DNA from: Macrostomum lignano
Taxonomy: Eukaryota
Reading direction: 5' to 3'
Assembly (NCBI GenBank): GCA_002269645.1
Contig: NIVC01000250.1
Location: 1 to 64,000 of the forward strand
DNA: 64,000 bases
The translations under genes were made by a program, and so were the position numbers. Below the pieces are notes generated by a model that worked only from the letters and a program-made list of their open reading frames with translations, was not told the DNA's origin and did not search any database. Of the stretch, positions 28,177 through 44,643 are shown piece after piece (position 1 is the first letter of the stretch; every line of letters begins with the position of its first letter).

Positions 28177-28255
28177 AAAAAAAATAGACAGTCAAGTAAT
28201 TGTCGATGGCCGGTTACCTGTGGAGCATAAGTTAATCCATCGACTCCGGACCGCC
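28177..28255 (-). ncRNA. Y RNA-like gene, copy A (intronic in TMEM245)
   Basis: GGCGGUCCGGAGUCGAUGGAUUAAC…GGCCAUCGACAAUUACUUGACUGUCUA-U8. GGCGGUC pairs with GACUGUC, and GUCGAUGG pairs with CCAUCGAC. TATA-like TAAATAAATAG about 30 nt upstream. Confidence 0.8.
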
Positions 28256-28459
28256 CCAGCCTAACACCTGGTAGCCTCACCCGCTATTTATTTAGCTCCA
28301 TACAGACCCGTCAACTGATGCAACCTTGTGAAATTCAACGATAAAAAGATATACAAATACGCTACTAATCTACTGATAGTAAAAACATGGGACTTTCAGC
28401 AATTATTAAAATATTTTTTATGATGGACCCTAACGAGCATAAAAACGTTACCCATATCT

Positions 28460-28880
28460 GTTAGACACAAATATTACCTGCTAGACAGGAATAATACGTG
28501 TTAGACAAGAAATATACCAGTTAGACAGGAAGTATACCTGTTAGACAGGAAGTTTACCTGTTAGACAGGAAGTATACCTGTTAGACAGGAAGTATACCTG
28601 TTAGACAGGAAGTATACCTGTTAGACAGGAAGTATACCTGCTAGACAGGAAGTATACCTGTTAGACAGGAAGTATACCTGCTAGACAGGAAGTATACCTG
28701 CTAGACAGGAAGTATACCTGTTAGACAGGAAGTATACCTGTTGGACAGGAAGTATACCTGTTAGACAGGAAGTATACCTGTTAGACAGGAAGTATACCTG
28801 CTAGACAGGAAGTATACCTGTTAGACAGGAAGTATACCTGCTAGACAGGAAGTATACCTGCTAGACAGGAATAATACTCT
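28460..28880. repeat. 20-bp repeat CTGTTAGACAGGAAGTATAC
   Basis: Direct reading. Confidence 0.95.
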
Positions 28881-28946
28881 ACATGCAAATCTTTACTTTA
28901 AGTAGTAAAACTAGCAAAAATGTAGTTTTATCAATCCAAACGCTAC

Positions 28947-29095
28947 CTTTCGATCGCCCCGCAGCAGCAGCTTGTAGATGCCCCTGACGGGGAACGGGGC
29001 CAGGGCTTCTCGACGGCTTTCAACTAGTTGCATCGCCTGGCTGTAGGCTGAGCTGGCCCAGCGCTTTGCCAGCTGGCTGCCTCCGATGCTGTCAC
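28947..29095 (-). CDS. TMEM245: TMEM245 exon 4 (…ESRREALAPFPVRGIYKLLLRGDRK)
   Basis: cttag|GT acceptor and AAG|gtagc donor. Phases fit the neighbouring exons; resembles the TMEM245 P.P..G...LL...D.K motif. Confidence 0.8.
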
Positions 29096-29139
29096 CTAAG
29101 GGGAGGGGCGGACCAGTGAACTGTCTTTGAGCTGTGAAA

Positions 29140-29392
29140 GTCTATCCTTGTAGAGGGTAGCAGTCTATCCTTGTAGAGGGTAGCAGTCTATCTATGGAGT
29201 AGAAGTCTATCACTCTATGGGGAAGAAGTCTATCACTCTATGGGGCAGAAGTCTGTCACTCTATGGGGCAGAAGTCTGTCACTCTATGGGGCAGAAGTCT
29301 GTCACTCTATGGGGCAGAAGTCTGTCACTCTATGGAGTAGAAGTCTGTCACTCTATGGAGTAGAAGTCTGTCACTCTATGGGGCAGAAGTCT
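29140..29392. repeat. 23-bp repeat GGGCAGAAGTCTGTCACTCTATG
   Basis: Direct reading. Confidence 0.9.
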
Positions 29393-29433
29393 CAGGCAGA
29401 AATCAAAAAACATTTTCAACTTATAAGTCGCAC

Positions 29434-41192: not shown

Positions 41193-41253
41193 CACATCTA
41201 CATGTACGTAGAAGACAGTGACCAGGATTTAAAATTAATGAAGATTCTGCATT

Positions 41254-41356
41254 AAAAATTTGGCAGTCAAGTTAGTGCCGATGGCCGTATTTCATGCCTA
41301 TCTATCTATCTATCTATCATGAGTAAGTTTTGTTAAGCCATCGACTCCGGACCGCC
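41254..41356 (-). ncRNA. Y RNA-like gene, copy G (GAUA repeat in loop)
   Basis: GGCGGUCCGGAGUCGAUGGCUUAAC…GGCCAUCGGCACUAACUUGACUGCCAAA-U5. GGCGGUC/GACUGCC lower stem is fully paired. TATA-like box at 41383-41391. Confidence 0.82.
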
Positions 41357-42775
41357 TTGCTTGAGCTTTGGCGTCTGAACTGCTATTTAAGCTCTACAGA
41401 CAGGCTTTGATGCAATGAAAAGAATCTTACCACTAAAATGCACACATCATGCTCCTATCATCTACTTCAAGTAGAAATACACATTTTTCATTCCAGATTT
41501 CGCAGAAAAACTACATTTAGAAACTATACTTGGCGTCTGAATAATTCTGATCAGATGCAATCTGAAATTTATAAAAGTGATGTAACCACGTCTTGGTCGC
41601 GGGATGAATTGGGGAAATTTTTCGAAATGTCCCCGATCCCCTTTGACCGAATGGGCAGAGCTGTCGAGACTGGGCCGGGTCTCCCTGAACTCCCGCTCTG
41701 ATTGCGACCCCTGCTGTCTCTGTTCCGTCTCCCACGCAGCCACACTTGCCTTTCTGGAGCCCCCCTTTTTTGTGCACCTCGCCTGCTCCCGCATTTCTCA
41801 TGCGCCTCAGACCATTTATCATGTATTTCTCGTGTTTTTCCCGTCTTTTTATCATGTTCTTGCACGGTTTTCTTGCGCTGTCCCCTCCTCGTCCCGTGCC
41901 TACTTAGAATATCGCTTGTGCAGATCGTCACCCCATCTCCCTTTAGGATCCCAAATGGTGACGCAAGGCTCCTGACCCCTCCCTCACCCCGATGACTCAT
42001 CACCCACCTCTTGCGCAACCTTTCTCATGCTATTGATCACTTCCCAAGATTTCTCATGTGACAGCCTCCCCTCCTCCGCTTCCATTTTTCTTGTTTTTGA
42101 TTTTTTTGTTCTTCTTTTCGCACCTAATTAGCACCTTTTTTCTCAATGTTTGCTTTTCCATTTTTCTCGATTCTCCCCAATTATCCTCGATTTCCATTTC
42201 CTTTATTCTCGATCTGATTCCCATTGTTCTCAATGTTGCTTGCGCAACACTTCTTCGACCTCCCGCTGGGCTTATTTTCCCATCAATCCCCGTCCGGATT
42301 GCGCATGTTTCCCATTTCTCATGTTGCTATGCCGTTCTTATATTTCTCATAATGACTCATTCTGACGTCATCTTCCCGGCGGCCAATCAGAGTAAGGGAG
42401 TCATGGAAACGACCTTGGAGTATTTAGAGGACTATTTAAGGAAGTGATTTCGGCGTGACAACCTGCAAAGTTTTGGCCTTTGGTCTTCTGCAAGACCTTC
42501 GCCCAGCTTGGCTTCTCGTTCTATCTTTGGACTTGCCGTCGTCAGACGCCGGTCTGAACCCCCCCCATTCGTCTATAGGACGAACCTCTGCCAGCCCGCG
42601 GTCTGATACCGCCTAGATTCCTCAGCTCCCCAAGCGAGCTTATCTACCGGCCCGCGGTCCGATACCGCCCAGCATCCTCAGCATCGCCTGAGCTACATCA
42701 GTGCCTCGTCGCTTCAGCGCATCGCCGCTTCACTACCTGCCTGTCCGCAGCCAACAGCCGCCCTCGGTCACTCCA

Positions 42776-43001
42776 TCGCTCTCTCTCTCTCTCTCTCTCT
42801 CTCGCTCTCTCTCTCTCTCTCTCTCTCTCTCTCTCTCTCTCTCTCTCTCTCTCTCTCTCTCTCTCTCTCTCTCTCTCTCTCTCTCTCTCTCTCTCTCTCT
42901 CTCTCTCTCTCTCTCTCTCTCTCTCTCTCTCTCTCTCTCTCTCTCTCTCTCTCTCTCTCTCTCTCTCTCTCTCTCTCTCTCTCTCTCTCTCTGTGTGTGT
43001 G
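42776..43001. repeat. (CT)n microsatellite followed by (GT)n
   Basis: Direct reading. Confidence 0.98.
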
Positions 43002-44160
43002 CAGCTGCCGTTGAGTTCCTGTACTGATTTTTGCTCTAATTGCCTTTGCTTATCCGGGGTCGGCTTATTTCCCATTGCTTGATTAGAGAGCTGAGCCAAT
43101 TATGTACCTTGCTGTATTTTACTCACTAGTGAAGCCGCCTAATTGCCTGTTAATTTCGCCTAAGGGCCTAATTATAAACAATTACTAAAACAACTCATTT
43201 TTCACACCTTCACCATCATTTCACCCATGGCTTGCTGAGCCTTTCTCCCTGGGTGGCAAAGCATAAGGAAGTTTGGGTAAGCTAATGGCATCTCCCCGTG
43301 CAAAGCCCGCCTGTGTGTGCGTGCTGCGGGTCCGTGTGTGCGTGCAGTAGAGGTAATTAGCGTGTCTTGGCACAGAATGGCAGCAGGAAGGTTGCAACAC
43401 CCTGCTCACGCGTCCCTTCGCCCTGAGCAATCTAAACTATAGCTGGTACATGTTCATCTCGCACTACTCTTAATAATTGAAGCCGCAAGTCCGCCTCGCT
43501 CACAGCCTCAAAGGATCTCCTGCTGAGAAATCCTCCAGATTGATCCCAGAGTTCCCGAGTATGCCCCAAGCAGAGTCCCTGTACTCGGCTGCATGTGTCT
43601 CCCCTGTTAGCCTAAACCCCCTGGTAACCAATCCAGGCGGGGCTCTAGCCTCGAAAGGTCTGGTCGTAAGATCCAGGTGCGCCAGTTCACATAGAGTGGT
43701 GGCAGCCATTCGGTCATGCCATGACCGAGTGACCAACTATTGCACCTTGGCTACAGGTGGGGTCCATGTGGGTCCTTGGCCCTCTGGTCACAAAGCGCTA
43801 CCAAAGCTATCAATCATGTGGGCGGGACAGTCTGGTGCTGGAGGTCCGTCAGGTCATTGCCCGGTCATAGGCAGCCTACGGTCATTGCCCCCTATGGTCA
43901 TACGCCCCCCTTCCCGTGGAGCAGACGGTCATCAAGGGCAGTTACATCAAAAGGCCAACATCATATTTTATTTCTCATAAACTGCTTCATAATTATTACA
44001 GTAAATAATTCTACTGTAACAATTCCACTATAAAGCATAAACTAATTTTACTTTCACTAAAATGAAACAATGCAAATTTAAGTTACTAAAAATCTTTATT
44101 AATGTTAGACAAATTATGTAAACAGTGATAGCAATTTTAAGCTCAATGAAAATTCTGAAT

Positions 44161-44251
44161 AAAAATTTCGGCTGTCAATTTCAAGTGTCGATGGGATGGA
44201 ATTCATGGCTGTGTAAGCTCGTTATAGCTAACCCTTCGACTCCGGACCGCC
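44161..44251 (-). ncRNA. Y RNA-like gene, copy H (shortened promoter spacing)
   Basis: GGCGGUCCGGAGUCGAAGGGUUAGC…UCCCAUCGACACUUGAAAUUGACAGCCGAAA-U5. TATA remnant only about 13 nt upstream. Confidence 0.7.
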
Positions 44252-44568
44252 GAACTGCAACTGCTGTTTAAACTCCTCAATGCGCAGCTCATGCAATCCG
44301 GCCAATTTCTCCAATAAATAATTCTACACATACGCTATTAATTTACTTACAGTAGAAAATGGCAAACTATGCGTAGAACATTTTGAAAGAATGTAACATT
44401 GAAAAAATTAACTAAAAATTGTTTGAAAATCTGCTGGTCAGTGTTGGACTTTTGATCTTGTCAAGGATCAAGTAGTCCTTGTCATTCACCTATTCATGTA
44501 CATTTACATGTTGAATTCTCGTTTCCTAAAGCCCAGAAATATTTGAAAACTTTTGGATTAAAGCCAGC

Positions 44569-44643
44569 AAAAAAGCTGGTCAAGTGAGTGCCAATGGGGT
44601 ATTTTGAGAGCAATTCAGTTAACCCATCGACTCCGGACCAGCC
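44569..44643 (-). ncRNA. Y RNA-like gene, copy I (GGCUGGUCCG type; 1 loop substitution vs D)
   Basis: GGCUGGUCCGGAGUCGAUGGGUUAACUGAAUUGCUCUCAAAAUACCCCAUUGGCACUCACUUGACCAGC-U6. TATA-like box at about 44667-44675. Confidence 0.9.

Follow-up and report, generated by a model that had tools for sequence, protein, structure and literature searches.

The window analysed here is a stretch of 64,000 nucleotides (nt) from the flatworm Macrostomum lignano (assembly GCA_002269645.1, contig NIVC01000250.1, positions 1–64,000). It contains a cluster of nine short, related units that we read, with a probability of roughly 80%, as a tandemly duplicated gene family of stem-bulge RNA (sbRNA)/Y RNA type that would be transcribed by RNA polymerase III (Pol III). 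A preliminary description, made from the sequence letters alone, had proposed a Y RNA family in a probable flatworm. The guess about the host was correct, as a 679-amino-acid open reading frame (ORF) at 51316–53355 is 100% identical to an M. lignano chromo/enoyl-CoA-hydratase (ECH) protein and positions 38162–63355 of the window coincide with the same positions of contig NIVC01000250.1.

The plus strand of the window has exactly nine occurrences of the 13-nt core TCGACTCCGGACC, over a span of 28240–44639, against 0.6 expected, and none of 100 shuffled sequences equalled this count. A further site, at 63004, fits with two mismatches. With up to two mismatches allowed, the 20-mer singled out in the preliminary description was found at eight of the nine sites (0 expected), and the ninth site, at 36622, reads CTAATCGACTCCGGACCGCC. 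Each site belongs to a minus-strand unit of 74–103 nt that includes a GGUCCGGAGUCGA core, and the units and their outer coordinates (28177–44643) reproduce the earlier account in all details. Units start with GGCGGUCCGG in six copies (a-like) or GGCUGGUCCGG in three (b-type), continue with AGUCGAUGGGUUAAC or a close variant, and end in CCCAUCGACACUCACUUGAC or another CUUGAC variant followed by 3–7 nt and, in all nine cases, a run of five to eight T (T5–T8). A covariance model built from the nine copies, run over the 64 kb with filters off, recovered exactly these nine, with the next best candidate at 13 bits. All of them lie on one strand in one 16-kb cluster, as follows (sizes include the T-run; the last position is that of the plus-strand core):

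28177–28255, minus strand: Y28, 79 nt, outlying, 8 kb from the other copies; core at 28240
36543–36637, minus strand: Y36, 95 nt, a diverged copy; core at 36622
37043–37122, minus strand: Y37a, 80 nt, a-type; core at 37107
37514–37587, minus strand: Y37b, 74 nt, b-type; core at 37571
39090–39170, minus strand: Y39a, 81 nt, a-type, GGCGGUCCGG...CUUGACAGCC; core at 39155
39563–39636, minus strand: Y39b, 74 nt, b-type, same sequence as Y37b, within a duplicated module; core at 39620
41254–41356, minus strand: Y41, 103 nt, with a (GAUA)5 microsatellite in the loop; core at 41341
44161–44251, minus strand: Y44a, 91 nt, a decaying a-type copy; core at 44236
44569–44643, minus strand: Y44b, 75 nt, b-type, GGCUGGUCCGG...CUUGACCAGC-T6; core at 44627

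To assign the units to a family, we scanned the window with all Rfam families at their curated thresholds, the gathering score being 38 bits for both RF01656 (ceN72-3_ceN74-2, nematode sbRNA) and RF00019 (vertebrate Y_RNA). The scan returned six matches, every one of them to RF01656, with scores from 38.9 to 45.4 bits (Y44b 45.4; Y37b 44.5; Y39b 44.5; Y37a 42.9; Y39a 42.6; Y41 38.9). At a permissive threshold RF01656 also matched Y44a (31.3 bits) and Y28 (30.4 bits), both below 38, while Y36 matched no Rfam family at E ≤ 1. The RF01656 alignments are global and keep the stems of the model, and the differences in the terminal stem are compensating, such that the outermost pairs differ in sequence yet still pair. 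The three b-type units also align end to end with RF00019 (model positions 1–96) at 26.9–27 bits (Y44b 26.9; Y37b and Y39b 27), and share with its consensus GGCUGGUCCG, UGGGUUA, CCCA, ACUUGAC-AGC and the U tail. In this alignment the consensus of the Ro60-binding helix (GGUCCG / UUGAC, with the bulged C) is matched letter for letter. Given the RF01656 scores and the view that sbRNAs are the nematode homologues of vertebrate Y RNAs (PMC4726728, PMC4450293), we regard the units as sbRNA-type members of the Y RNA superfamily. Of the two models that the preliminary description had suggested running, the nematode one thus supports a Y RNA family, with six units above threshold, and the vertebrate one does not support a vertebrate-type family, as its 27 bits stay below the threshold of 38.

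The likeness to nematode sbRNAs extends to individual bases. The sbRNAs, for which Deng 2006 and Boria 2010 are reportedly the sources, have the consensus GGUCCGGaGucgaUGGGUUAUC...CCCAucgaCACCAACUUGACC, and the flatworm a-type units read GGUCCGGAGUCGAUGGGUUAAC...CCCAUCGACACUCACUUGAC, so that the cores are almost identical. Kowalski et al. 2015 (PMC4450293) define sbRNAs by three features: one bulged C in the lower stem, an upper stem of 9 bp that has a UG-CA core between GC clamps, and a loop motif that is conserved. The bulged-C terminal stem and the clamped 9-bp UG-CA upper stem are common to both groups, as are an upstream TATA-like element, an oligo-T terminator and arrangement in tandem arrays. 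The flatworm units differ in their host, which belongs to the Spiralia and not to the Ecdysozoa, in the loop motif (UUAAC instead of UUA(U/C)C), in the upstream box (TTAAATAG instead of GTATA), and in having loops much shorter than the RF01656 model, about 45 positions of which are deleted. With vertebrate Y RNAs (RF00019; hY1/3/4/5), the b-type units share the GGCUGGUCCG start, the CUUGACCAGC-U5/6 end and a UGGGUUA sequence atop the upper stem; this start and this end equal the consensus that Y RNAs have in the helix bound by Ro60 and the tail bound by La. Vertebrate Y genes are likewise clustered and have external TATA-containing promoters, but the flatworm RNAs are shorter (about 70–98 nt before the T-run), have AUG-CAU in place of GUG-CAC in the upper stem, and lie in a cluster of nine copies compared with one to four in a vertebrate Y cluster. 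Unlike the flatworm RNAs, CeY of C. elegans does not have the conserved upper-stem motif (PMC4450293). Reviews place CeY, the insect sbRNA-like RNAs (Bombyx, Anopheles) and the amphioxus Y RNA in the same superfamily (PMC4726728, PMC11825425).

Single-sequence folding, RNAalifold and the Rfam covariance-model alignment all produced the same two stems. The bulged-C lower stem and the upper stem of the preliminary description were therefore recovered three ways, and RNAalifold, which it had named as a check, predicted them independently from the nine copies. In the terminal stem, GGUC-C-GG pairs with CUUGAC in all nine units, with an interruption at the second C of GGUCCG. RNAalifold places this 'bulged' C opposite a U (a C.U mismatch) and pairs GG with CU; the units could also adopt the register homologous to that of vertebrates, in which two G.U pairs follow the bulged C. 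The upper stem has 9 bp (GUCGAUGGG/CCCAUCGAC), with G-C clamps at both ends and UG-CA at the centre, and is followed by UUAAC. Six units have the full clamped 9-bp stem with its UG-CA core, pairing GUCGAUGG(G/C) with (C/G)CCAU(C/U)G(A/G)C; Y28 has 8 bp, and the core is broken in Y44a and Y36. The loop starts with UUAAC in eight units (displaced by an insertion in Y36) and with UUAGC in Y44a. The terminal stem separates three subtypes. The three b copies (GGCUGG...) have a perfect 8-bp stem, subtype a (GGCGG...), with two copies intact, has a G.A mismatch, and Y41 and Y28 have G.U at that place.

Six of the eight units folded formed the expected two-stem hairpin with z-scores of –2.2 to –3.9, and the other two, Y36 (0.04) and Y44a (–0.5), were close to their shuffles. 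The minimum free energies (kcal/mol) and z-scores were –30.2 and –3.8 for Y41, –25.8 and –3.5 for Y44b, –24 and –3.9 for Y37a, –21.8 and –3.0 for Y39a, and –21.8 and –2.2 for Y28, with a z-score of –3.0 for Y37b. In a MAFFT alignment of the nine copies, 92.4% of the pair cells held standard pairs, compared with 15–52% when the 3' partners were slid by one to three columns, and none of 500 column shuffles matched the observed pairing or covariation score. Three pairs changed on both sides, one of which does not depend on the alignment, a G-C to C-G change at the top of the Y41 upper stem. One-sided changes that preserve pairing (U-A to U.G, G-C to G.U) distinguish the a from the b types.

Upstream of the units lies a TATA-like box, TTAAATAG. 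The window contains 14 copies of this sequence where 3.2 would be expected, and five of the 14 are in an unrelated minisatellite. Seven others lie on the minus strand upstream of seven units, at –24 to –31 or –27 to –34 from the initial GG:

36664–36671, minus strand: TATA-like box of Y36, –27 to –34
37146–37153, minus strand: TATA-like box of Y37a, –24 to –31
37611–37618, minus strand: TATA-like box of Y37b, –24 to –31
39194–39201, minus strand: TATA-like box of Y39a, –24 to –31
39660–39667, minus strand: TATA-like box of Y39b, –24 to –31
41383–41390, minus strand: TATA-like box of Y41, –27 to –34
44667–44674, minus strand: TATA-like box of Y44b, –24 to –31

The other two units have variants of the box, CTAAATAAATAG in Y28, ending at –29, and TTTAAACAG in Y44a. 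The clustering described earlier and the signal of a putative external TATA-type promoter are present in the sequence, with a box 24–34 nt upstream of seven of the nine units. All nine upstream regions also contain TTGCA(T/G), or TTGTAT in Y36, 12–23 nt above the box, and its position makes this element a candidate proximal sequence element. Nematode sbRNA loci have an upstream PSEB-like element together with a GTATA box, and terminate at oligo-T (PMC2527325). By homology, we infer Pol III transcription, Ro60 and La binding, and a replication role. An external, type-3-like Pol III promoter would consist of TTAAATAG and the TTGCA(T)-containing element 12–23 nt further up; transcription would begin close to or at the GG, some 24 nt below the box, and stop in the T5–T8 run. 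The resulting 3' oligo-U tail would be bound by the La protein, and the terminal helix by Ro60. A palindrome, TTCTACT(n2-3)AGTAGA, lies about 105–125 nt above the a-like genes (Y36, Y37a, Y39a, Y41 and Y44a), and may act as a distal element of the promoter or may just belong to the duplicated module. Three examples are:

about 36740–36760, minus strand: palindrome upstream of an a-like gene
about 37225–37245, minus strand: palindrome upstream of an a-like gene
about 41460–41480, minus strand: palindrome upstream of an a-like gene

The cluster contains repeated a+b gene pairs, which record how it grew:

36952–37676, minus strand: duplicated module 1, an a-type and a b-type gene (Y37a and Y37b) with their promoters and downstream flanks
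38999–39684, minus strand: duplicated module 2, with Y39a and Y39b
44498–44843, minus strand: b part (Y44b and flanks) of a third, older a+b pair, 73% (repeat family D7) and 85% (D11) identity

Modules 1 and 2 are covered by the direct-repeat families D7, D8 and D10, whose copies here lie 2047–2049 bp apart and are 93–99% identical, and in a blastn comparison module 1 was 97.6% identical to the 39-kb module over 719 bp. Y44a (44161–44251) is the a gene of the third pair and lies just outside 44498–44843. No A-rich tails or target-site duplications were seen around the nine copies. Because the flanks were duplicated along with the genes, these hallmarks of retroposition are missing and all copies are on one strand, the spread occurred at the DNA level, by tandem duplication of promoter-bearing modules of about 0.7 kb and not by retroposition. 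Nematode sbRNAs are likewise found in tandem arrays (PMC5745555).

We compared the five diverged types (Y28, Y36, Y37a, Y41 and Y37b) by ungapped identity and obtained a mosaic. The TATA box was the most conserved segment, at 95% identity, followed by the 5' arm (88%) and the 3' arm (at least 64%, an underestimate, as Y36 is mis-anchored); identity fell to 28% in the loop, 25% in the 30 nt above the box and 33% in the 30 nt below the terminator, values close to random. This pattern indicates that the paralogues are old enough for unconstrained sequence to have randomised, while the stems and the box were kept.

A second contig of the same assembly, NIVC01000118.1, is 98.96% identical to 38384–47771 of the window, with 15 substitutions and 10 indels in 9.4 kb, and holds the same five genes. 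Y39a, Y39b and Y44b are identical there, and Y41 differs solely by a 7-nt change in its (GAUA)n loop microsatellite, its stems being identical, which indicates that the loop tolerates changes in length. This microsatellite was also detected as (GATA)5 at 41287–41310 of the window, with its counterpart at 2859–2969 of the piece NIVC01000118.1:258120–282558 (L122). Three of the 15 substitutions fall within the 91 nt of Y44a, in its upper stem and loop motif, and in the window copy of Y44a 12 nt are deleted from the stretch that separates the TATA variant from the start, where NIVC01000118.1 keeps the spacing. In its wider extent, NIVC01000118.1:258120–282558 matches 38384–63198 of the window at about 99% identity over at least 16 kb, including the chromo/ECH gene (PAA90280.1, PAA87064.1). 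The second copy stems either from a haplotype or from a large and very recent duplication. Large recent duplications are known for the M. lignano genome.

Judged by their sequences, about six or seven of the nine copies look functional. Y37a, Y39a, Y37b, Y39b, Y44b and Y41 are probably functional, and Y44b looks intact. Y28 is borderline, with its 8-bp upper stem, a variant box at another spacing, a score below the Rfam threshold and a T8 terminator. Y36 is probably dead: the 5' strand of its upper stem reads GUCGAUUAGG, which disrupts the UG-CA core, and its lower stem is weak (CUCGACAACC), although it retains TTAAATAG and a T6 run. Y44a is a pseudogene. An A.A mismatch breaks the UG-CA core of its upper stem on both contigs, and this common lesion, together with the three substitutions on one contig and the 12-nt deletion on the other, indicates that its two copies have decayed independently.

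We considered whether the units could instead be a Y/sbRNA-derived repeat, that is, a short interspersed nuclear element (SINE) or a group of retro-pseudogenes, most of them inert and derived from a master gene elsewhere. The human genome contains many Y RNA pseudogenes, two or three of the copies here are degenerate (Y44a, Y36 and perhaps Y28), and the neighbourhood is rich in repeats and transposon remnants, among them a mariner element at 34831–35202 and a non-long-terminal-repeat (non-LTR) reverse transcriptase at 60391–62310. Retroposed copies are nevertheless hard to reconcile with upstream promoter sequence and downstream flanks that are common to the copies in modules duplicated whole as DNA, with a TATA box that keeps its distance though the rest of the flank has randomised, with the missing poly-A or A-rich tails and target-site duplications, and with a single cluster on one strand that has no further copy in the 64 kb. 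The preliminary description had named thousands of copies with target-site duplications as the sign of a SINE, and as far as the window shows there are neither such duplications nor dispersed copies. We therefore think it quite improbable that the cluster is a repeat. A tRNA scan found no tRNA genes in the window, which rules out a tRNA-linked Pol III cluster or a tRNA-derived SINE. Foreign DNA, such as nematode contamination, or an assembly artefact might be suspected because the best Rfam match is a nematode-named family and because a perfect 105-nt foldback beside Y41 suggests a local assembly oddity. The cluster is, however, joined to protein-coding genes of M. lignano within a 237-kb contig, recurs in slightly altered form on another contig of this assembly (363 kb), and has loops, flanks and a loop motif unlike the nematode consensus. 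We rejected nematode contamination, as two M. lignano contigs carry the cluster amid host genes, and regard a foreign or artefactual origin in general as extremely remote.

A different question is whether the units could be transcribed sbRNA homologues that have some other role in flatworms and neither bind Ro60 nor license replication. As a class, sbRNAs help to initiate DNA replication and are required for proliferation. In nematodes, however, the functions of CeY and the sbRNAs have drifted apart, the replication assay showed no activity for two C. elegans sbRNAs whose upper stems are intact (PMC4450293), and the strength of the terminal stem differs among the three subtypes found here. Against this stands the conservation, almost base for base, of the GGUCCG/CUUGAC helix and the 9-bp UG-CA upper stem, two functional modules established by experiment in other phyla; this conservation is hard to explain across phyla without retained interactions, and we consider such a change of role unlikely.

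The following observations count against the sbRNA/Y RNA gene family as a whole, and the first two also favour a different role. Ro immunoprecipitates from C. elegans contained CeY only and sbRNAs were not found in them (PMC4726728). The loop start, UUAAC, agrees with the nematode and vertebrate UUA(U/C)C at four of five positions, with A at position 4, and a full-length nematode sbRNA in which UUA(U/C)C was mutated lost its in vitro replication activity (PMC4450293). The same paper calls the motif 'typically' present and dispensable in minimal stem RNAs (PMC4450293), so we treat UUAAC as a lineage variant and see in it no ground for exclusion. The b-type units score 27 bits with RF00019, short of the gathering score of 38, and no RF00019 score was reported for the other units. 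A word-indexed search with human Ro60 (sequence verified against PDB 9nen) returned vertebrates only among its best 120 matches and did not identify an M. lignano Ro60. We place little weight on the covariation, which is thin: the nine copies amount to about six different sequences, and of the three double changes two hinge on how GGC-GG is aligned with GGCUGG. The 15 substitutions between the two contigs are too few to prove purifying selection on the intact genes and are informative for Y44a alone. Finally, copy number was counted within the 64-kb window only, a point that also favours a repeat, and expression, the RNA ends and the polymerase are predictions from the DNA.

An exhaustive search of Ro60 representatives showed no flatworm among the 10 sampled of 150 representatives; those sampled include chytrid fungi, the choanoflagellate Salpingoeca, Trichinella, Gonium, lamprey and the spiralian Lingula. 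In a metagenome scan for GGTCCGGNGNNNNTGGGTTA there were at least 120 matches, and among the matches listed 116 lacked the 3' half and are probably due to chance. Four environmental contigs carried the full architecture, UGAGGUCCGGAG...UGGGUUAUC...CCCAU...UU(U/C)GACCU..T4-7 (L010, 435–500; L090, 1310–1400; L093, 551–665; and L105, minus strand). These four units matched no Rfam family at E ≤ 0.01 and were not used for covariation; they are probably Y/sbRNA-like genes of small eukaryotes.

Copeland et al. 2009 listed Y RNAs among the expected non-coding RNAs not found in Schistosoma genomes, and noted that Y RNAs were then known from vertebrates and nematodes only (PMC2770079). Reviews of 2015 and 2025 add Anopheles, Bombyx, amphioxus and bacteria, and no lophotrochozoan (PMC4726728, PMC11825425). 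Our literature searches, subscription-only papers aside, found no paper on a Y RNA or sbRNA in a flatworm or any other spiralian or lophotrochozoan, and no report of RF01656 outside nematodes. The sequence database of Rfam contains M. lignano sequences (PMC8824774) and WormBase ParaSite applies Rfam to its genomes (PMC5486357), so automated annotation probably already flags six of these loci. The earlier suggestion that the cluster may be undescribed consequently stands for the literature, where no flatworm paper was found, and probably fails for annotation, as an off-the-shelf Rfam scan detects the loci. The system is of a known kind, and standard Rfam annotation is enough to find it.

We give about even odds to a broader proposal, that these are the first Y RNA/sbRNA genes in Platyhelminthes and Spiralia, that the sbRNA architecture is ancestral to protostomes, and that the subtypes have divided roles. 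If it is true, the near base-for-base identity of the cores would place the Ro60 helix, the 9-bp UG-CA stem and the UUAxC loop start in the protostome ancestor, and the b-type, with its perfect vertebrate-like Ro60 site, and the a-type, with its G.A mismatch, may split Ro60-linked and replication-linked roles. The cluster is a clear multi-gene family in a free-living flatworm of basal position. It fills a gap where the schistosome survey reported none (PMC2770079), shows strong conservation of the two stems across distantly related protostome phyla, and supplies query sequences and a covariance model for more diverged genes in parasitic flatworms. M. lignano can be made transgenic and is rich in stem cells, so that a need for Y RNAs in neoblast DNA replication could be addressed there.

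No protein-coding genes were called between 38162 and 48161, and a scan for bacterial-type promoters and terminators was set aside as irrelevant to a eukaryotic Pol III gene. The other features of the window are:

24349–26068, minus strand: two exons of an inositol polyphosphate kinase (IPK domain), upstream of the cluster
34831–35202, plus strand: mariner-type transposase fragment, between Y28 and the main cluster
60391–62310, plus strand: non-LTR retrotransposon ORF (RVT_1 and RNase H), beside TCP10_C/CENPJ-like exons on the opposite strand
40878–41192: perfect foldback with arms at 40878–40982 and 41088–41192, 105 nt each and 100% complementary

The foldback lies 61 nt downstream of Y41 and encloses a 105-nt copy, 95% identical, of the Y41 upstream region (41390–41495), without the TATA box or the gene. 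It is also found on the second contig, and may reflect either a genuine palindromic rearrangement or an artefact of long-read assembly. Minisatellites are exceptionally dense at 1–31100 and 54253–63500, with periods of 10–145 bp and arrays of up to 2.2 kb, and yield long spurious ORFs, for example at 20020–22288 and 29348–31126.

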